NCBI GenBank assembly: GCA_026936335.1
Contig: JAPMXV010000003.1
Span: 186,001-250,000 of the forward strand
Length of the DNA stretch: 64,000 bases
Reading direction: 5' to 3'
Source: Mantamonas sphyraenae STR306
Lineage: Eukaryota; Protista; CRuMs
Shown here: positions 17,877 to 27,235 of the stretch, one piece after another
Numbering within the stretch: the stretch's first letter is position 1
Layout of the letters: each line of letters begins with the position of its first letter
Translations under genes and position numbers: made by a program
Notes under the pieces: model-generated
The model's database searches: none
What the model saw: the letters and a program-made list of their open reading frames with translations, nothing else
What the model was told of the DNA's origin: nothing

Positions 17877-20315
17877 ATGTCAACCATTGTGCCCCGCATC
17901 TCTCTGGATGTCGTCATCCAAGAGCTCAAGGACCTCAACGCCTCCTGTGCAAAGGTTCGCCAGCTCGCCACCAAGCACCCGGACCTCCAGACTCAAATCG
18001 ACGACCTCGTGGTCGCAAGCACCCAGGTTGCAAAAACCCTCCTGACCCACTCCTCCACCCTCGTGTCCCACAAATTCCTCGGCTCCTCCGCCTCTGCCTC
18101 CGCCTCTGCCTCCGACGCCAAAGACGATGACCCATCTTCCGGCACCGACTCTGACCACTCCTTCGAGTCGGAATCCGTCACCGCAAATCCAGAGGCCACC
18201 CTTTTCGTCGTCGAAACCCTCGCTTGTGTCGTCCACGAGTTTCTCCAGCCCGCCGCACAGGCCCTTGACGAGCTCGCCGACGTCTACGATGGCAACATGT
18301 TTGCCTCCATGCTCTTTGACTTTTCCAAGCGTCAAACCACCCTCCAGATCGCCTGGAGCAAGCTCAACCTCATCCACCCGTACCTTGCCCTCGACAACAT
18401 CGTCCTCCCCGATCAAATCATCAACGAGACCACCCCAGCCCTCCAGGACGTCATGCTCGTCCAGGAGGTCGGCGGCAAGATCGGCCGCAACATGAAGTTT
18501 GCCATGCACATGGTCAACGTCGGCGCAGGTTTCATGAGCGACCTCCATGCAGAGGGCGACGGCCAGGTCGAGAAACTCTTCAACTCCATGCTCGGTGCCG
18601 CAAAGGCGCTCGTCTCAACCGAGGAGAGCAAGCGCAAGGTTGACCTCGCTCGCATGGGCTCCCTCAAGGTCGAGGACATGACCCAGTTCTGGTCCATTCC
18701 AGAGAACGAGTGGCTCAAGAAGCTTAGCCTCGGCGAGATTGCCCTTCCCGTCCTCGAGGTCAACCAGATGGTCATGTTCCATCGCGTCGCCCCGCACCTC
18801 TCCAGCGACGCCATCGACAACGACACCACCGTTGCCTTCCGTCTCATGTTCTCCAAGCCCATTCCCCTCCTCCAGAAGCTCCATCAGGCCCAACACACCA
18901 TCCGCTCTCGCAAGGGCTTCACCGTCGAACTCGTCGCAAAGAACCTCGACGACTGGGCATGGTTCAACCGCGCTGCCATCGACGCCCTCGATGCAGAGCT
19001 CCAGCAGGACGCACAGGAACACGCCGCCGACGACGACGACTCGACTGACACACAACAAGACGGCGCCGGCGCCTCCTCCTCCTCCTCCTCTTCCTCCAAG
19101 AAGAAGAAGGAGCAAAACAAGAAGAAGAAGAGCGACAAGAAGAAAGAGGACAAATTGCCCAAGGATTTCACCTCGGATCCGGAGGACCTGCTGGAAGATG
19201 AGGACGACGACGACGAAAGCCGATCTGCGAAACGACTGTGGAAACTGCTGCACACGCAGGCCAAAGAGTACCATGGTGTGCGGCACCTGTCTGCCTCTCA
19301 AGTCAAAGACTCGGTGCATCTGTTGCGCACCTCTGCCCACGGCCAGCCACTCGAAAACGACACCTCGCAGCTGCCCATCGATCCCAAGCACCTCACACGC
19401 GTCCCTGCCGTCGTCATGCACATCCATGGCGGTGGGTTCGTGGCCATGAGCTCCTTTTCTCACCAGAGTTACCTTGCAACTGTCTCCAAGCGTTTAGGCC
19501 TGCCCATTGTCTCTGTCGACTACAGACTCGCCCCTGACTACCCGTATCCCCTTGGCCTCAACGACTGCATCGACGTTTACCGCTTCCTCAGCAACCCTGC
19601 CCACCTCGCACGCATCGGTCTCGCCACAAACAAGATCTTTGTTGTTGGCGACAGCGCAGGCGGTGGCCTTACTGCCAGCCTTGTCCTCCACGCCATTCAA
19701 AACCAGGAGCGCGTTCCCGACGCCGTCGTCCTCGAATACCCGGCTCTCGATCTCAGCCGCAAATTCTACCCTTCCCAAGCCATGCACTTCCGCGACGACC
19801 TCCTGGCCGTTCAGCTTGTCGAGCTCTGCTCCAACGCATACATCGGCGACGGCGATCCCCTCGCCGACCATCTCCTCAGTCCCATGCAGGCCCCCGACGA
19901 TCTGCTCCTCCAATGGCCCAAGACCGTCTGTGCCGTGGGTGGTCTCGATCCCCTGCGTGACAACACCCTTGTTTTCGTTCATCGCCTTGTCCACCTAGGC
20001 AAGGCCGACAACGTCCGCCTCAAACTCTACCCAGACATCGCCCACGGCTTCCTCAACTTTGACATGATCCCCGAGATGAAGATGACTGTCAACGACCTCT
20101 GCAAATGGCTCCTGGCCTTTCTCGCCGACGACGCAGACCTCGACTTTGTCATGGGCATCTCCCGTGACGACACTTCCTCCTCCTCCTCGGCTTCTCAGGC
20201 ACAGGACGACCAACCCAACGTCTCCTCCACCCCATCCACCACTGGACTCCAGGATGACGATGGAAACGAAGTTCACAAAGTCAAGGTCGTGGTGGGCGAC
20301 GACGCGAACGAATGA
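17877..20315 (+). CDS. Hormone-sensitive lipase-like alpha/beta hydrolase
   Basis: HIHGGGFVAMSSFSHQSYL, SVDYRLAP, nucleophile motif GDSAGG, LDPLRD and HGF; long N-terminal region as in HSL. Confidence 0.9.
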   Translation: MSTIVPRISLDVVIQELKDLNASCAKVRQLATKHPDLQTQIDDLVVASTQVAKTLLTHSSTLVSHKFLGSSASASASASDAKDDDPSSGTDSDHSFESESVTANPEATLFVVETLACVVHEFLQPAAQALDELADVYDGNMFASMLFDFSKRQTTLQIAWSKLNLIHPYLALDNIVLPDQIINETTPALQDVMLVQEVGGKIGRNMKFAMHMVNVGAGFMSDLHAEGDGQVEKLFNSMLGAAKALVSTEESKRKVDLARMGSLKVEDMTQFWSIPENEWLKKLSLGEIALPVLEVNQMVMFHRVAPHLSSDAIDNDTTVAFRLMFSKPIPLLQKLHQAQHTIRSRKGFTVELVAKNLDDWAWFNRAAIDALDAELQQDAQEHAADDDDSTDTQQDGAGASSSSSSSSKKKKEQNKKKKSDKKKEDKLPKDFTSDPEDLLEDEDDDDESRSAKRLWKLLHTQAKEYHGVRHLSASQVKDSVHLLRTSAHGQPLENDTSQLPIDPKHLTRVPAVVMHIHGGGFVAMSSFSHQSYLATVSKRLGLPIVSVDYRLAPDYPYPLGLNDCIDVYRFLSNPAHLARIGLATNKIFVVGDSAGGGLTASLVLHAIQNQERVPDAVVLEYPALDLSRKFYPSQAMHFRDDLLAVQLVELCSNAYIGDGDPLADHLLSPMQAPDDLLLQWPKTVCAVGGLDPLRDNTLVFVHRLVHLGKADNVRLKLYPDIAHGFLNFDMIPEMKMTVNDLCKWLLAFLADDADLDFVMGISRDDTSSSSSASQAQDDQPNVSSTPSTTGLQDDDGNEVHKVKVVVGDDANE

Positions 20316-20435
20316 ACAAGCAGTGTCCCCCAACAGAATTCCTCCCTCATGGGCGCTTCCTTCAGCTCTGCCTTTTCAGCTATTGTTGAAGGCGCTGCCG
20401 CCTCGGGGGGTGCATGCCGTGATCGCATGTCCACC

Positions 20436-20685
20436 ATGGTCGCCAACAGAGGTCCGTAACGGCTGAAGCGCCAAAATCCAATCCGTCGCACCCCCACCGC
20501 TCTCCACTGCCACCACAGCCATGTCTTCCACTCGCCTTGTGCTCACTCTGTGCCTCTGCTTCACGCTATTGCCCGTCCGCGTGCCCGTACGTCCTGTATT
20601 TCCTCCTCCCACAGGCGACGTCGCCGTCGACGTCAACTCAGGTGCGTTTGTTTGGCCCTTTCCACATCCACCGCTTTGCCCTCGT

Positions 20686-20719
<34 letters not shown>

Positions 20720-23700
20720 ATCCGCTGCCTCTCCGCCTCCATATCTCGCACGGCTTGTGTCCATCCACACGCACTCCTTGCTTCTCTCGTCCGGTGTGAC
20801 GTTTGTGTCCGTGTCCACAACCCCACGTGAGTGTTGCCTTCCGACGCTCACCTCCTCTCCGCAACAGATTCCGACTTTTCAAGCGATCTCGACTCGGACT
20901 CGGATGATGAAGACGGCTACAAGGAGACAGAGGCGGACAAGGTCGAGTTTGAGGGCTACTCGCGCAAGCGACACCTTATGCCGCCGTCCAGCGAGGTGGA
21001 AAAGGCGATGGCCCTTGCGCGCCTCCACCGCGCCGCCGAGAAGAACGAGCTGGAGCTGCTCGAAACCTGCATTGACGCAGGTCTTTTTATTGATCAAACC
21101 AACTCCCAGGGCTACACCCCGCTCCAGGTCGCTCTGCTGAATGGCCACCACGAAACTGCGGTCGTGCTCATCAATGCTGGCGCAAACTGCTGCATTTTCA
21201 CAGACGACAACTTCTCCATGCTGCACATCGTCGTCATGAAGTGCAAGGAAAAGATCAAAGACGCCTCGTTTGTCAAAAAGATGGCCAATGTCGCCAGCCT
21301 GCTGCGAGTCCACGGCTGCGACGCAAACTTCCAGAACGGCGACGGCCTCACCGCATACGATCTGGCACGCAAGCTCGGTGCCCAGGATCTCACAAACATC
21401 ACCAATCCGTTCCACCTGCACAACGCCGTCTTTGACATGGATTCGGGCAAAATCAACAACGTCGCCCTCCTCGAGGAGTTGCTCAGCGTCCCGGGACAGG
21501 ACGTCGACATTCGCAACGAAGAGGGCAAGTCTGCTCTGCACGTCGCCGCCGAAAAGGGCGCCCTCGAGTGTGCCGAGCTGCTCGTTGAGGCTGGCGCAAA
21601 CGTTCTTCTCAAGGACAACATGGGCCTCGCCCCAAAGAACTGGGCCACTTTCAATGGCCAACAAAAGGTGGCCGACTACCTCGTACAAGCCGAGATGGAG
21701 TACAAGAAGAAGGAGGCTGCCAAGCGCAAGATGAAACTCAAGGAGATGGGCAACACCAATCGCTTCCGCTTCCTCAAGGCCTTCCGCCCGCAGGTCACCT
21801 ACTTTGCCTTTCTCACCCTGCTGGCCATTGTGGTCATTGCACGCACGTCTACAGACTTCCATGGTTACTACTTCAAGACTCTCATCGAGGGTTCCATCAT
21901 GGACGGCGACGACGGCGGACGCGGAGACACAACCGAGCTCACCCTGGCCGGCTCAGACCACTTTTGGAGTTATGTGGACGAGTACCTGGTACCCACTCTA
22001 TGGGGAGGCACAAGTACAGGCGTCACCATGGACTACAGCGAACTTGTGGGCGCAGTGCGGTTCCGCCAGCTGCGTGTCAAAGCCAACAGCTGCAGCCTGC
22101 CTGCGTTTGCCAAACCCACCATTTCCGTGTGCTACGCTTCCTTTGACGACTACACTGAATCATCCGATGCATACGGCCCCTCCAACAAGTTTACGTACTC
22201 TTCCGCTGCGACGCTGGGCTACCACGCAGTCGAAGGCAGGTTTGGCACATACACAGGCGGTGGCTTTGTGCAGGACTTTGGGGCCACGCTGTCGCTCAAT
22301 GCCACACAGACCATGGTCGAATCGCTCAAGACGGACAGCTGGATCGATGCACAGACGCGTGCAATCCTGGTCGACGTCAACCTGTACAATCCCAACATCA
22401 ACATGGTGGCCAACACGCGCATCATCAACGAATTCCCACCCACCGGTGGATTCCTTGTCTCTTCGCGCATCCAAGCCATGTACGTCACGCCGTACTACAA
22501 CGGGTGGGACTATGTCAGCCACGTTCTCGAGCTCGCTCTGCTGGCCTTTGTCATCTACTACGCGGTCATGCTGGGCAAACAGCTCATGCGCCAGAAACGC
22601 GCCTTCTTCTACGACATGTGGAACAACCTGGACATGCTCATCACCACTCTCTTCCTGCTGAGCTTCTCCCTGCGCTTTGCCAGCCTGGGAATCGCAGGCG
22701 AAGCACTTGCCACCTTTGAGCGCGACCGGACATCACACATCTCCTTTGAGTCCCTCACGCGCGTGTTTCGATTGGAGCGCGACCTGCTGGCCACCGCCAC
22801 CATCCTTTGCTGGATGCGGCTGATCAAGTACACCCAGCAGCTGCCGCACATCGGTCCCTTTGTGCTGACCGTGGCCAAGATGTCCCAAGACCTGGTCATG
22901 TTCATTGCCATGAGTGTGGTGGTGCTGTGTGGTGTCTCGCTTGCCTTTATGCTGTCGTTTGGCACGCAAGCGTTCGGCTTCCGCGGCTTTGGCGCCACCC
23001 TGAACACGCTGTTTCGCTCTGTGTTTGGCGACTTTGAGTTGGTCAACGTGAGCAGCAACCCGAGCATGGGCACCATGCTCTTTGTTGCCCACGAGATGTT
23101 TACCACAATCATCCTGCTCAACCTGCTCGTCGCCATCCTCAACGACACCTACTCGCGCTACCAGAAGCTGTACAAAATCCAGTGGCGCGACGCAGCGGTA
23201 GCCGACTTGTTGGCAGAGGCAGGCGGCGATGCAAATGACGAGATTGCTGCGCTGATGAAGGAGGAGCTCGAGAAGGAGCTGGGTGGCATGATCGACGTGG
23301 GCCAGGACGTGGACGACGAGAGCAAGGCGCTCGAGGAGGACATCAAGAACATGATGTCCAAGGTGACCACGTTGGCCGAGACGGAGAAGAAGCGCACGCG
23401 CGACCTGGCCGAACAGTTTGAGAAGCTGGACGACAAGATCGAAACCACGGTGAAGCAGATGACGCTGTCGCCCGAACAGATTTCGGAGATGGAAAACCGT
23501 CTGGAGATGCTGGAGAAGAAGGTCGTGGAGAAGGACTCGTTGATCGAGCACGTGCTGACCGAAAAGGAGGAGCAACGCCTGAAGATGATCAAGGACTTTG
23601 ACATGAAGCTGGCTGCGGCCAAGAAGGCCAAGAAGGAGAGCGAAGAAAAGTTGCGCACGGCCGCCAAGCAGCTGCGCGGTGACTTGCGAGGCGAAATGGA

Positions 23701-26110
23701 GCGGCGTCTGAAGAAGTTGCAGGAGCAGAAGCGCAAGAGCGAGGAGGCGCGGGACAAAAAGTACGCCAAGCTGGAACGGATCAAGGAAAAGATGGAGGCC
23801 AAGTACCAACAGGCGCTGGAGAAGCAGTCGGACAAGATGGGCGGGGACATGGACAAGGCGTTGGAGGCGGCAGAGAAGCTGCGGGAAAAGCAGGAGCTGG
23901 AACTGACCGCGCAGCTGATGGAGCTGGAAGAAGCCAAACAGGCAAGCGAAATGGCGCTGCAAGAACAGATGGAGGAGATGCGCGCTGCTCTGGTGGAGGA
24001 GATGGAGCAGAAGTTGGAAGCGGAGGTGGAGGCGCGCAAGAGCGCTGTGGCCGGGTGGAAGGAGCGGTACGCGGAGTTGGAGGAGGCCAAGAAGAACAAC
24101 GAGGCCAAGCTGAAGGGGGTGATCAAACAGCAGAAGGAGGATCTGATCAACAAGATGAAGTCTCGCCTGGATGCAGCGTCGCAGGACAAGGACTCGCTGA
24201 AGAACGACCTGATGACAAAGTACCAACAGTTGCAACTGGAAAAGGAAGAAATGGAGCAGCGACTGACAGCCGAGATGGAGGCGCTGGAGACGCGGCTGAA
24301 GAAAGAGATGGAGGACGCTCTGGATGCTGCGGAAAAGAGGCGAGCCAAGCAGGAGGAGGAGTGCCACGAGAAGCAGCGGGTGATGAAGGAGGAGCGCGAA
24401 CACATGGAGGCATCGTACGAGCAACAGTTGGCACACCTGAAGGAGTCGCACGCAAAGGAGCTTGCGAACAAACTGGCGGCGGCTGCAAACGACAAAGCCA
24501 GCATGGAAGACAAGATGCGTGGAGAGTACGAAAAGTTGGAAGAGGACAAGATGGTGATGGAGGAGGAACTGAACAATGCGATGAAGGCGTTGGAGGAGCG
24601 GCTGACGGAGGAGATGGAAACGGCAGTGCAGAATCTGAAGGACGAGCGCGACACAATGGACGAAGAGTGGGCAGAGACGTACGAGGAACTGGAGCGAGAG
24701 AAGAAGGAGAGCGAAACGGCGTTGCAGAAGCAGATGCGAGATGCAATCCAGGAACTGCAGGAAAGATGCGTGTGGCGGCAAAGGAGGCGGAGCACAGGTT
24801 TGCAGTGGCGGCGGAGGAGCACAAGCAAGCGTACCAGGATCTGCAGCGGGAGAAGGAAGAGATGGAGACGAAGCTGCAGCAGATGATGGCGGAGCAGGAG
24901 AAGCGGCTGACAGGAGAGATGCAGGCGGCGGAGGAAGAGGCGCGGCGCAATGTGGAGGCGATGGAGGCGCGGTTCGAGGAAGAGACAGAGAGGCTGCATC
25001 AAGACTATGCGGAGCAGCTGCATGTGAAGGACATGGAACGGGAGCGTGTGGAGGAGGCGTTCCAAGCGGAAATCGAGCACATCAAGGCGGCCAAGATGGG
25101 CAAGGAGGACGAACTGACGGGCACGCAGAGCGAACTGGCCAAGTGGCAGCGATCGCTGCGTGAGGCGACGAGGGACAACGAGAAACTGGAAAAGGCGTTG
25201 GACAAGCAGGTGCAAAAGATGAACAAGCAGACGGAGCAGTGGAACAGCAAGCGCATGAAGCTGCTGAGCGAGTTGGAAGGGTTGCACGAGAGCGTACGCA
25301 CGCTGACGGCAAGCAACGGTGCGTTGGAGTTGCAGCTGTTTGCGCAGAAGCAACAGAACGAGGCACTGGAGAAGCAGAACAGAGAGGTGAGCTCGGAAAA
25401 CACGCGGCTCAAGGCAGATGCGGTGGACATCGAGGAGCTGCGGGAGGAGTTGGGACGCAAGCAGAAGCAGTTGGACAAGATCATGCCAGAGCTGGAGGAG
25501 CTGCGTGCGGCCAAGGCCGAGGCGGAAAAGCCCGTGTACAAACCGAAGCGCGACAAGATCGACAACATGCTGGCAGAGCTGCTGGTGAAGCTGATGCATC
25601 TGTACATTCCAAGCAACTTTGCACGTATCAGCGAAGGTATGTACCGCTTCGGATCCAAGGTGATTCGCCTGCAGATTTTGAACGGCCAGCTGGTGGCACG
25701 TGTGGGCGGTGGTTTCCTGCCATTTGCAAATTACGCAGAAAAGTACGGCCAGATGGAATGCCGCAAGCTGGAACGACAAGGAGAGCCCGGGCGGCTGGAT
25801 CTTGTGGCGTCGTCCACCAACGTGTTTGACGGCGACGACATTGGCAGCGACGGCGACGTGACGGACCTGGTGGGTGACGTGAACGTGAACCCGGATGACG
25901 ACGGTGGATGGGGCGAATGGATCAAGGCACATCTGGACATTGTGTCTGAGATGTCGAGCCAGAGCGCAGAGGAGCGGCAGGAACGTGCGGAAGAGATTCT
26001 TGGCACTGCCGAGAACGAGCGCGAGCGCAAGGCGTTGCAGACAATGATTGACGAGCAAGAGCGGCGTTTGCAGGCCGCGGAGAATCTGGAAAAGTTGCAA
26101 AAGGGAAGTG

Positions 26111-26152
<42 letters not shown>

Positions 26153-26169
26153 GCAGCGGCAGCGGATGA
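20436..26169 (+). CDS. PKD2: Polycystin-2 (TRPP)-like channel with N-terminal ankyrin repeats, long coiled coil and C-terminal GAS2/GAR domain; one apparent 1-nt frameshift at ~24763
   Basis: Ankyrin repeats (GYTPLQVA, GKSALHVAAEKG); polycystin motifs LVGAVRFRQLRV, GGGFVQD, WIDAQTRAILVDVNLYNPN, IILLNLLVAILNDTY; GAR motif EGMYRFGSKVIRLQILNGQLVARVGGGF. Two small upstream exons start at a CCACCATGG context (20436). Confidence 0.85.
20687..20717. repeat. (CA)n microsatellite in a PKD2-like gene intron
   Basis: Uninterrupted CA run visible in sequence. Confidence 0.9.
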
Positions 26170-27235
26170 AGGAAATGAAGCACAGGTCAACCGAGGGCTT
26201 TGATTTGAACTTTTTCGCGGAGCGTTCGCTACTGCGGTAACGTATTTGATCGCCGTAGAGTCGAACGAGGAGGTGAGGAAACTGCACGCCAAAGACGGAG
26301 CCTGCTTTTTGCAGGGTGAGGAGGCGGTTGTGCTGAGTGACGAGCTTGAACGTGTTGCTGGTCTCCTGTACAATAACGCCGTGCAGGCCGACCTGATGCG
26401 GGGAGCGGCTCTGGAGGACGGTGAGCAACGCGCCATGGTAATCGGCCTTGAGGAGGCGCTCGTGGGTGTTGTTGTTGATGGTGATGGGTGTGGGACCAAC
26501 GACATCAGCGGCATACTGTTGCCAGAGGGTGCGCATGGGCTGTGTCTGGGCAAAGGTGGGGTGGTGCTTCTTGCTGAGGACATGAAGACCTTGCTTGCGA
26601 CGCTGAGTTGCGCTCAGCTGCTTGCCACGGTTTGCGTGGTTGCTTCGTGCAGAGGCCGAGGAGGCGGTGGAGCGTGGGTTGTCCATGAGAACAATGGAAT
26701 CGGACGGCAGCTTGCGTGCAATCTCCTTGTTGATGGCAGCAGAGCTGTAGCGGCCGACCGAAGAGGTGCTACGGGGATTCCGGCTCTCCTGCAGCATGAG
26801 GCCACGTACAAACTCGTGAACCACCTCTCCACTGCGCGTGTCCTCTTCTTGAAGCATCCCGTCGTGCTGCATGCGCTCCTTGTCTGCTCCCAGCAGCTTG
26901 GGGCGTGCATTCTTGGGCAACTCAGCATAGATGAGCTTCTCTCCCTCCTCCTGCTCGGTGCTCAGGGCAAACTCGCTTACGGGCTCGTTGCGTCGTTTTC
27001 TATTCTTGCGAGAGGAGGAGGAGGAAGATGAGGTGCTTGTGGTGGAGTTGTGCTTGTTTGTCGGCGTGGTGGCTCCGACGTCGATGCGTTGTCGCTTTTC
27101 GTGATTGCCATGAGAGGAGGAGGAGGAGGAGGAGGAGGAGATGGGGTGTTGGTGTTGTGTTTGAGAGGCGTCTCTGCTGCGCTTGCGTGCCGAGGACGCC
27201 TTTGCACGGGCGGAAGGTGCGCCGGGCTTGGGCAT
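25922..27235 (-). CDS. POP4: Ribonuclease P/MRP subunit p29 (POP4/Rpp29); 3' end uncertain, homology ends ~26183
   Basis: LLKADYHGALLTVLQSRSPHQVGLHGVIVQETSNTF...LYGDQIRYRSSERSAKKFK. Confidence 0.88.
26113..26165. repeat. (AGC)n trinucleotide repeat encoding poly-Ser
   Basis: Visible AGC run just before the PKD2-like stop codon. Confidence 0.9.

Follow-up and report, generated by a model that had tools for sequence, protein, structure and literature searches.

A TRPP channel of Mantamonas sphyraenae fused to ankyrin repeats, a long helical rod and a putative microtubule-binding GAR domain

Gene structure and transcript support

The gene described here lies on the forward strand of a 64,000-nucleotide window of the Mantamonas sphyraenae STR306 assembly (GCA_026936335.1, contig JAPMXV010000003.1, positions 186,001 to 250,000); all coordinates below are positions in this window. 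Mantamonas is a deep-branching genus of marine flagellates without genetic tools. With one missing A added, the restored frame encodes 1810 amino acids in three exons. Exon 1 (20349-20451) begins with MGASFS, which aligns to the MGAGFS start of the M. plastica orthologue (P0001). Intron 1 (20452-20614, GT...AG) joins in frame and in agreement with P0001, which also matches the DVAVDVNSD peptide of the 27 nt exon 2 (20615-20641). Intron 2 (20642-20867, GT...AG) contains a CA repeat, and exon 3 (20868-26169) is a single frame after the correction, ending with a TGA codon at 26167-26169. The start originally predicted at 20436 is an internal methionine: the in-frame ATG at 20349 is preferred because it aligns to the conserved N-terminus of the M. 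plastica orthologue. A contig of sequencing run X3 reaches 165 nt upstream of 20900, which is the spliced distance back to 20346.

In the uncorrected assembly, the frame is closed by a stop codon at 24884-24886. This frameshift arises from the loss of one base from an A run (24761-24764, where AAA should read AAAA) and is an assembly error, as the proposed fusion requires. The extra A behind 24761 is present at full depth in contigs of three sequencing runs (X1, X2 and X3), one of which is probably RNA, and is also seen at the loose end of an X4 contig. Neither an intron nor a programmed frameshift at 24763 fits the reads, which contain one more A and show no joint there. Misassembly was also rejected, as the X1 and X2 contigs each span the whole examined stretch; the single listed contig "joint" is based on 21-letter matches from another locus and was discounted.

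A complete M. plastica transcript encodes an ankyrin-TOP-TRPP-rod-GAR protein of 1833 amino acids. The fusion is therefore real and belongs to one gene, carried on a single transcript in the sister species, and both the single polypeptide and the continuous frame across 24700-24900 that had been predicted are borne out by the contigs and by this transcript. That the locus is a broken gene or two adjacent genes, as the assembly stop would imply, is refuted by the full-length orthologous transcript and by the additional A that contigs from three runs carry, and a 51-residue repeat register that runs unbroken across the frameshift site also argues against it; we give this artefact practically no weight.

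Domains of the predicted protein

Exon 1 encodes a Gly2/Ser6 N-myristoylation-type motif that is conserved at the M. plastica start, as well as a conserved cysteine (GGACRD) that could be palmitoylated. From these motifs we infer N-terminal acylation, which would be compatible with targeting to the flagellar membrane. Approximately six to seven ankyrin repeats follow (21014-21706), identified by Pfam (Ank_2, E 7e-21; Ank_4, E 2e-16; ~21023-21706) and present in the structure that AlphaFold predicts for the M. plastica orthologue (mean pLDDT 82). The ankyrin domain is 78% identical between the two species, and its last helix is predicted in the M. plastica model to extend as one long helix (220-282) into S1.

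The channel itself (S1, TOP domain and S2-S6) occupies 21779-23155, as determined by Pfam, PDB alignment and Foldseek. The Polycystin (TOP) domain (PF20519, E 5.5e-30, 21950-22480) and the PKD_channel domain (PF08016, E 1e-26, 22499-23155) both score above their cut-offs. The best solved relative is human PKD2 (E 3e-57), and PKD2 is also the best Foldseek match for the M. plastica model (E 1.6e-28, TM 0.90 by target). In the PDB alignment, the extracellular TOP domain keeps both of its disulfide cysteines; the F-G-D-F filter (~23024-23035) and the S6 segment LLNLLVAILND align with those of PKD2. Judged by its sequence, this is a true TRPP channel, with conducting PKD2-type rather than PKD1-type motifs. 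S5-pore-S6 is 84% conserved relative to M. plastica and the filter is canonical, suggesting that conduction is under selection. No part of the protein changes faster than the TOP domain (52% identity). No EF-hand was matched by Pfam in either Mantamonas protein. The genome contains approximately ten further PKD2-like genes that could supply conductance.

S6 is followed by a rod of approximately 740 residues, which would be about 110 nm long if extended. It comprises a proximal helical or coiled-coil segment (23174-23608; 86% conserved over aa 813-1000), a tandem array of approximately nine helical repeats of 51 residues each (aa 958-1416, 23609-24984) and a distal coiled coil without the repeat (24985-25527). 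The original prediction of ~750 residues of coiled coil is thus right as to a long rod and is corrected by the repeats within it. These were detected by autocorrelation, with peaks of 0.79-0.88 at lags 51, 102 and 153 against a shuffled maximum of 0.22 over the sampled lags; most units begin Y-x-x-L-E, and the M. plastica rod has units of the same period. Most of the rod is 65-68% identical to that of M. plastica. Its first 770 residues include one proline only, and aa 829-855 contain glycine pairs and an acidic stretch. Fifty-one residues correspond to 14 turns at 3.64 residues per turn; a match of the repeat to the 8-nm tubulin dimer is a weak lead, as 51 x 0.148-0.15 nm gives approximately 7.6 nm, which is somewhat short.

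The rod leads into a GAR/GAS2 domain (25528-25776) with a predicted topology of helix, five strands and helix. Pfam GAS2 (PF02187) matches at 25594-25746 (E 9.4e-7), its 29.1 bits exceeding the 21.3 cut-off, and the M. plastica domain scores 32.4 bits. The best solved relatives are the GAR domains of GAS2 and MACF1 (E 6.5e-6), and the nearest Atlas clusters are GAS2 (0.93-0.94). The predicted model is of moderate confidence (pLDDT ~60): its top four Foldseek matches are all GAR domains, with weak E-values (5e-3). At 91% identity to M. plastica, this is the most conserved region of the protein, supporting strong purifying selection. Among the positions at which GAS2 contacts tubulin, K237, R252, GGG (G254-256) and K266 are identical, and W257F (conservative), R242Q and H267Y are changed; the identical residues and the aromatic at 257 are the same in both Mantamonas species. 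The Cys-Cys-Asp-Cys zinc site retains its last cysteine alone, and the loop between helix 1 and strand 1 is without cysteine. Downstream are an acidic linker, a conserved three-helix tail (74% identical) and a poly-Ser end (25777-26169). The Pfam searches thus place all three domains (ankyrin, polycystin-2 channel and GAS2/GAR) where they had been predicted.

The same genome encodes a rod and GAR domain behind a myosin motor and also in other coiled-coil proteins, so that the rod-GAR module is in use in the Mantamonas cell. The rod of the myosin is unshared: only the GAR domain aligns, and the periodicity of the myosin rod is heptad. No myosin-GAS2 architecture was found in the literature searched, outside which most subscription papers lie.

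Distribution and phylogeny

The ankyrin-TRPP-rod-GAR architecture was found in two species of one genus, M. sphyraenae and M. plastica. Word-index searches with the ankyrin-channel, GAR and channel regions, of limited length window and word sensitivity, returned no channel-GAR fusion beyond Mantamonas. None of the best 150 matches of an exhaustive phmmer search carries a GAR domain (local HMM), and metagenome scans for the full architecture were empty.

The ankyrin-channel portion is more widespread. Ank + Polycystin_dom + PKD_channel proteins occur in Cyanophora paradoxa, Cavostelium apophysatum, Planoprotostelium fungivorum and Entosiphon sulcatum, and ankyrin-bearing TRPPs were also found among MMETSP and metagenome proteins; M. 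sphyraenae has a second copy. In a 35-row tree of channel columns alone, with PKD1-like proteins as the only outgroup, the ankyrin-bearing TRPPs form one clade with support of 100/99. This clade includes CRuM, glaucophyte and amoebozoan members, joined in a quick tree by the euglenid, and is separate from the lizard PKD2 (P0100) group; the Mantamonas protein falls on the PKD2-like side relative to the outgroup and is not grouped with animal PKD2. The architecture as a whole had not been recognised from elsewhere: the channel-GAR fusion is indeed confined to Mantamonas in our searches, but ankyrin + TRPP is, on the sequences compared, an old and widespread protist architecture and no part of this gene's novelty. 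The clade is apparently undescribed, as neither an ankyrin-TRPP family nor a channel-GAR fusion was found in the literature searched (most subscription papers being outside it). It blurs the textbook division of TRP channels into group 1, with ankyrins, and group 2, with a TOP domain.

Predicted function

We favour, with a probability of about 60%, the interpretation that this protein is a TRPP (polycystin-2-like) cation channel subunit with its own microtubule anchor. The subunits would tetramerise like other TRPPs and their four C-terminal rods would bundle into a nearly straight strut of up to ~110 nm, with the GAR domain docking in the alpha/beta-tubulin groove as in GAS2. A source of Ca2+ or other cations would thereby be held at a set place relative to a microtubule array of this gliding flagellate, be it the axoneme, a flagellar root or a cortical band. 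Anchoring and positioning are most likely the primary role, with force gating through the rod as a possible addition; a repeat rod of this length would suit an anchor or spacer more than a gating spring like that of NOMPC.

Several observations support the anchor. R252 and W257, the positions at which mutation is most damaging to GAS2-microtubule binding (PMC12084551), are respectively kept and conservatively changed, and K266 and the glycine hairpin are also kept. The GAR domain is far better conserved than either the TOP domain or most of the rod. The rod-GAR module also recurs in other proteins of the genome, and axonemal Chlamydomonas PKD2 provides a precedent for a microtubule-anchored TRPP (PMC7265326). 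Against it stand the loss of most of the zinc site, which is important to the folding of animal GAR domains (PMC12084551), the glutamine at R242, the moderate confidence of the GAR model, and the restriction of the fusion to one genus. The zinc-less GAR-like domain of Trypanosoma brucei SNAP1 reportedly does not bind microtubules (PMC10656233), which also counts against the anchor, although four of the five basic residues are missing there.

A stronger form of the anchor interpretation, and one compatible with it, is a tethered mechanosensor convergent with NOMPC, in which force between membrane and microtubule would pass through the rod to S6 and open the pore. The rod begins right after S6, the gate helix, is nearly proline-free, and S5-S6 and the proximal coil are 84-86% conserved. 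However, the NOMPC ankyrin tether and the gap between membrane and doublet are each several times shorter than ~110 nm, so a rod of that length would be slack or at a shallow angle. Between aa 829 and 855, the glycine pairs and the acidic stretch might decouple the rod from the gate, and six to seven ankyrins are too few for a NOMPC-type spring. To our knowledge, direct mechanical gating of TRPP channels is unproven in general. A further point against it is that TRPs are mostly insensitive to membrane stretch (PMC9108448). We regard this extension as rather unlikely. In its favour, tether gating is established for NOMPC (PMC9108448), and a mechanosensory role has been proposed for axoneme-anchored Chlamydomonas PKD2 (PMC7265326).

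Equally doubtful is an indirect anchor, in which the GAR-like domain would bind a microtubule-associated or other cytoskeletal partner rather than tubulin. The lost zinc ligands and the changed R242 suggest such a partner; the tubulin-facing surface argues otherwise, since K237, R252, GGG, an aromatic residue at 257 and K266 are kept, unlike in SNAP1, and these positions are identical in both species. Less probable again is a mainly structural role, with the channel tetramer riveting a cytoskeletal strut to the membrane and ion flux being secondary. Such a rivet might shape the flat cell, hold an organelle or, like Chlamydomonas PKD2 with its mastigonemes, use the TOP domain to hold an extracellular filament. 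In line with this role, over half of the protein consists of the repeat rod and GAR domain, the TOP domain changes fastest, and the other PKD2-like genes could conduct; the conserved S5-pore-S6 and canonical filter argue against it.

The predicted anchored channel bears on two long-standing questions, whether polycystin-2 senses force and how it is attached to ciliary microtubules. As one chain carries both the channel and a recognised microtubule-binding fold, simple deletions or point changes made in a heterologous cell could separate tether from pore, without an unknown partner. That the GAR domain of this TRPP binds microtubules directly and that force along the rod opens the pore at S6, making it a single-chain tether-gated TRP independent of NOMPC, is unlikely, slightly more so than the mechanosensor alone. 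If true, it would be the second single-chain tether-gated TRP after NOMPC, the first among polycystins, and a member of an undescribed ankyrin-bearing TRPP lineage spanning several eukaryote supergroups.

Comparison with known systems

Animal PKD2 and PKD2L1 share the six-transmembrane channel, the TOP domain with its disulfide cysteines and the G-D filter. At ~25% identity to animal PKD2, the Mantamonas protein adds N-terminal ankyrins and an acylation-type start, lacks an EF-hand match, and has the 740-residue rod and GAR domain in place of a short C-terminal coiled coil. Other protist ankyrin TRPPs have the same ankyrin, TOP and channel domains, but their C-terminal tails are 150-510 residues long and without GAR, some carrying WD40 or LRR domains. 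TRPW is likewise an ancient protist TRP family with ankyrins in some members, and acts on flagellar beating; in contrast to the Mantamonas protein, which carries a TOP domain but lacks WD40, it is group-1-like, with WD40 and little extracellular surface (bioRxiv 10.64898/2026.06.15.732144).

The GAS2 family, spectraplakins and SNAP1 share a C-terminal GAR domain preceded by an extended rod, the glycine hairpin and R252. Relative to the GAS2 family and spectraplakins, the Mantamonas protein lacks the zinc site, and its other end is an ion channel where those proteins have an actin-binding head; Pfam matched no CH domains or spectrin/plakin repeats in either Mantamonas protein. NOMPC/TRPN channels likewise use a cytoplasmic domain of their own as the microtubule link, a feature that is predicted in Mantamonas. 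NOMPC is a group 1 TRP with a long N-terminal ankyrin spring, whereas the Mantamonas protein, with six to seven ankyrins and a TOP domain, is a group 2 channel with a C-terminal rod ending in GAR, and is an analogue at most. The Chlamydomonas PKD2-mastigoneme complex is also a microtubule-attached TRPP, as is predicted here: there, a thin unidentified linker, seen by tomography, fixes the channel to the axonemal doublets (PMC7265326), whereas in Mantamonas a recognised microtubule-binding fold lies within the chain itself.

Gene structure and frame correction

Mantamonas sphyraenae, a member of the CRuMs, is a marine biflagellate that moves by gliding; its PacBio/FALCON assembly has been reported as 25.06 Mb in 78 contigs (PMC10492846), and the genome examined here comprises 25,061,354 bases in 78 contigs. 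The channel gene has three exons on the plus strand (20349-20451, 20615-20641 and 20868-26169), encoding 1810 amino acids (aa). The original prediction began at the ATG at 20436, but this codon is internal: 29 codons upstream of it are conserved with M. plastica, the source of the nearest protein found.

The original prediction of a single polypeptide depended on a frameshift at ~24763 being an assembly error, which it is. Four public sequencing runs, all of one study, contain the channel stretch. Contigs of three of these (X1, X2 and X3) carry one extra A behind 24761 at the full depth of each, giving one continuous frame, and the contig of the fourth (X4) ends at this site with letters compatible with four A. 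In both X1 and X2, one contig covers the whole compared stretch; these runs may be the source data of the assembly, and so correct its consensus but do not represent a second isolate. The 51-residue repeat of the rod also keeps its register across the repaired site. The M. plastica orthologue (P0001), a complete 1833-aa transcriptome open reading frame (ORF), gives independent support: its ankyrin, TOP, PKD channel and GAS2 domains follow one another as in the M. sphyraenae protein, and it can be aligned over its full length with the corrected model. We conclude that the channel-GAR architecture is real, expressed and conserved. The joined, frame-corrected model was used in pairwise alignment, repeat analysis and the tree, while database queries were pieces of the window or P0001. 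The P0001 rod contains a 37-residue stretch duplicated perfectly in tandem (~aa 1304-1380), which the M. sphyraenae protein lacks; either the length truly differs or the transcript was misassembled.

The label "DNA" for X3 is a guess, and we infer that this run behaves like RNA-seq. It contains 0.93 of the query words (the introns of the query would remove ~7%), its depth is uneven (340-800), its longest contig is 20 kb and its pieces tile the channel gene with 30-letter overlaps. The 5' contig extends 165 letters upstream of 20900, which is exactly the spliced distance to position 20346; the ATG follows three bases later. One RNA run is listed for M. sphyraenae (PMC10492846).

Only 33 bases (20315-20349) separate the stop codon of the upstream neighbour, a hormone-sensitive-lipase-like gene, from the channel ATG; given this gap and a probable transcript start at ~20346, the channel promoter must reach into the end of the lipase gene. 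The convergent downstream neighbour encodes RNase P p29 (POP4). Its ORF (25922-27235, minus strand) lacks a stop past the usual C-terminus near 26185 and continues antisense into the channel gene, possibly through another single-base assembly error; this region lies outside the stretch compared with the run contigs.

Ankyrin and channel domains

Pfam identifies ankyrin repeats, a polycystin TOP domain (E 5.5e-30) and a PKD channel domain (E 1e-26) in ORF 20831-24886, and the best solved relative of the channel is human PKD2 (E 3e-57), bearing out the predicted ankyrin repeats and full polycystin-2 channel. In an AlphaFold model of this part of the M. plastica orthologue (mean pLDDT 82), ~6-7 ankyrin repeats, the last continuing as one long helix into S1, precede a full TOP domain and S2-S6; the model matches PKD2 structures with a TM of up to 0.90 by target. 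The TOP cysteines, G-D filter and S6 motif are all retained. Identity between the two Mantamonas species is 52% in TOP, 55% in S2-S4 and 84% in S5-S6.

Relatives and origin

An exhaustive phmmer search with the ankyrin and channel part as query recovered nine more proteins that combine ankyrins, TOP and PKD channel (P0058, P0080, P0087, P0101, P0114, P0116, P0153, P0154 and P0164). They come from Cyanophora (glaucophyte), Cavostelium and Planoprotostelium (amoebozoans), Entosiphon (euglenid), an MMETSP transcriptome and metagenomes, and some have added WD40 or LRR domains. A second M. sphyraenae protein of this kind (L046:3771-7064, minus, G000:C44) is very divergent, lacks GAR and falls in the ankyrin-TRPP clade in the quick tree only. 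That tree, of channel columns alone, places 12/12 ankyrin-bearing rows in one clade (SH-aLRT 99). The careful tree, from which four ankyrin rows on long branches and many redundant ones had been removed, unites the remaining eight (100/99), including six of the nine relatives, which group with the Mantamonas protein at 100/99. Both are subject to long branches, selection of rows by similarity to the query and a PKD1-like outgroup only, TRPML and group 1 rows being left out.

With these caveats, the clade suggests that the ankyrin-TRPP combination marks an old lineage of protist channels. It is possibly an undescribed ancient TRP subfamily; our literature search found no description of an ankyrin-TRPP lineage. 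The original prediction knew of no other instance of the architecture. This does not apply to the ankyrin-TRPP combination, but none of the ankyrin-TRPP relatives has either GAR or a long rod, and within the sensitivity of our sequence, metagenome and paper searches the channel-GAR fusion was confined to Mantamonas. The simplest history would be addition of a lineage-specific rod-GAR tail to an ancient ankyrin-TRPP channel. The protein is a TRPP channel of new architecture, outside the TRPN and GAS2/spectraplakin families, and in the narrow sense does not count as an orthologue of animal PKD2. The genome has about eleven PKD2-like genes, several of them in lineage-specific groups (L036-L044); for a protist genome of 25 Mb this is an unusually large number of TRPP genes.

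Rods ending in GAR also occur behind a myosin motor and in two other coiled-coil proteins of this genome. The myosin (L034:10-5784; G000:C17:179009-184783) combines a motor and IQ-like motifs with a heptad coiled coil of ~1000 aa and, at the C-terminus, a GAS2/GAR domain (30.1 bits); it is a candidate for an actin motor whose tail binds microtubules. A frame break near L034:2140, seen in the assembly alone, puts its head and tail ORFs in different frames, and our literature search found no paper on a myosin-GAS2/GAR architecture. The others are L035:5248-6249 and L051:40-1644, the latter with a GAR-like domain at the end of a 2265-aa open frame, scoring below Pfam's detection.

Rod, GAR domain and proposed function

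We consider it probable (about 0.6) that the protein forms a tetrameric cation channel and that its own GAR domains anchor it to a microtubule array. These domains would sit at the end of a stiff rod, and the anchoring would position a Ca2+ source at a particular location, for example the flagellum, a flagellar root or the cortex.

The ~740 residues between S6 and GAR are helical and include just one proline; extended, they would measure ~110 nm. Residues 958-1416 form about nine 51-residue repeats, also found in M. plastica. Fifty-one residues equal 14 turns at 3.64 residues per turn, a periodicity for which coiled-coil theory predicts an almost straight bundle. The two species are identical at 86% of positions in the proximal coil and at 65-68% in the remaining rod. 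Force gating through this rod, the stronger claim of the original prediction, overlaps with anchoring and would accord with the attachment to S6 and the rod's conservation; it is nevertheless unlikely, since the rod is so long, a glycine-rich acidic stretch interrupts it at aa 829-855, and direct mechanogating of TRPP channels is in general unproven.

The predicted GAS2/GAR-like C-terminal domain is recovered by Pfam in the frame after the ORF (29.1 bits; cut-off 21.3). Among solved structures it is closest to the GAR domains of GAS2 and MACF1, and its nearest Atlas clusters are those of GAS2. The predicted fold runs helix, five strands, helix (pLDDT about 60); the top four Foldseek matches are all GAR domains, with weak E-values. 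Identity between the species is 91%. In a cryo-EM study of GAS2 on microtubules, R252E raised the Kd from 0.69 to about 47 uM, among the largest binding losses, others being W257E (27 uM), K266E (10.6 uM), G255E (9.6 uM) and R242E (5 uM) (PMC12084551). Aligned to solved GAR domains, the channel's GAR retains K237, R252, the three glycines and K266, with W257 replaced by Phe, R242 by Gln and H267 by Tyr; one of four zinc ligands is kept. T. brucei SNAP1, a coiled-coil protein whose zinc-less GAR-like domain lacks four of five basic residues, does not bind microtubules (PMC10656233). Because the contacts are mostly kept and the zinc ligands mostly lost, and by comparison with SNAP1, microtubule binding appears likely, not certain. 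That GAR binds an adaptor instead is about as unlikely as force gating, and a mainly structural rivet is the least probable role.

The N-terminus reads MGASFS in M. sphyraenae vs MGAGFS in M. plastica, followed in both by GGACRD. Gly2 and Ser6 match the pattern for N-myristoylation, and the GGACRD Cys could be palmitoylated. Several proteins are sent to cilia by dual acylation (PMC6678300), although in these the Cys usually adjoins Gly2. A functional precedent for the proposed microtubule-fixed channel is PKD2 of Chlamydomonas, which a thin unidentified linker ties to doublets 4 and 8 (PMC7265326).
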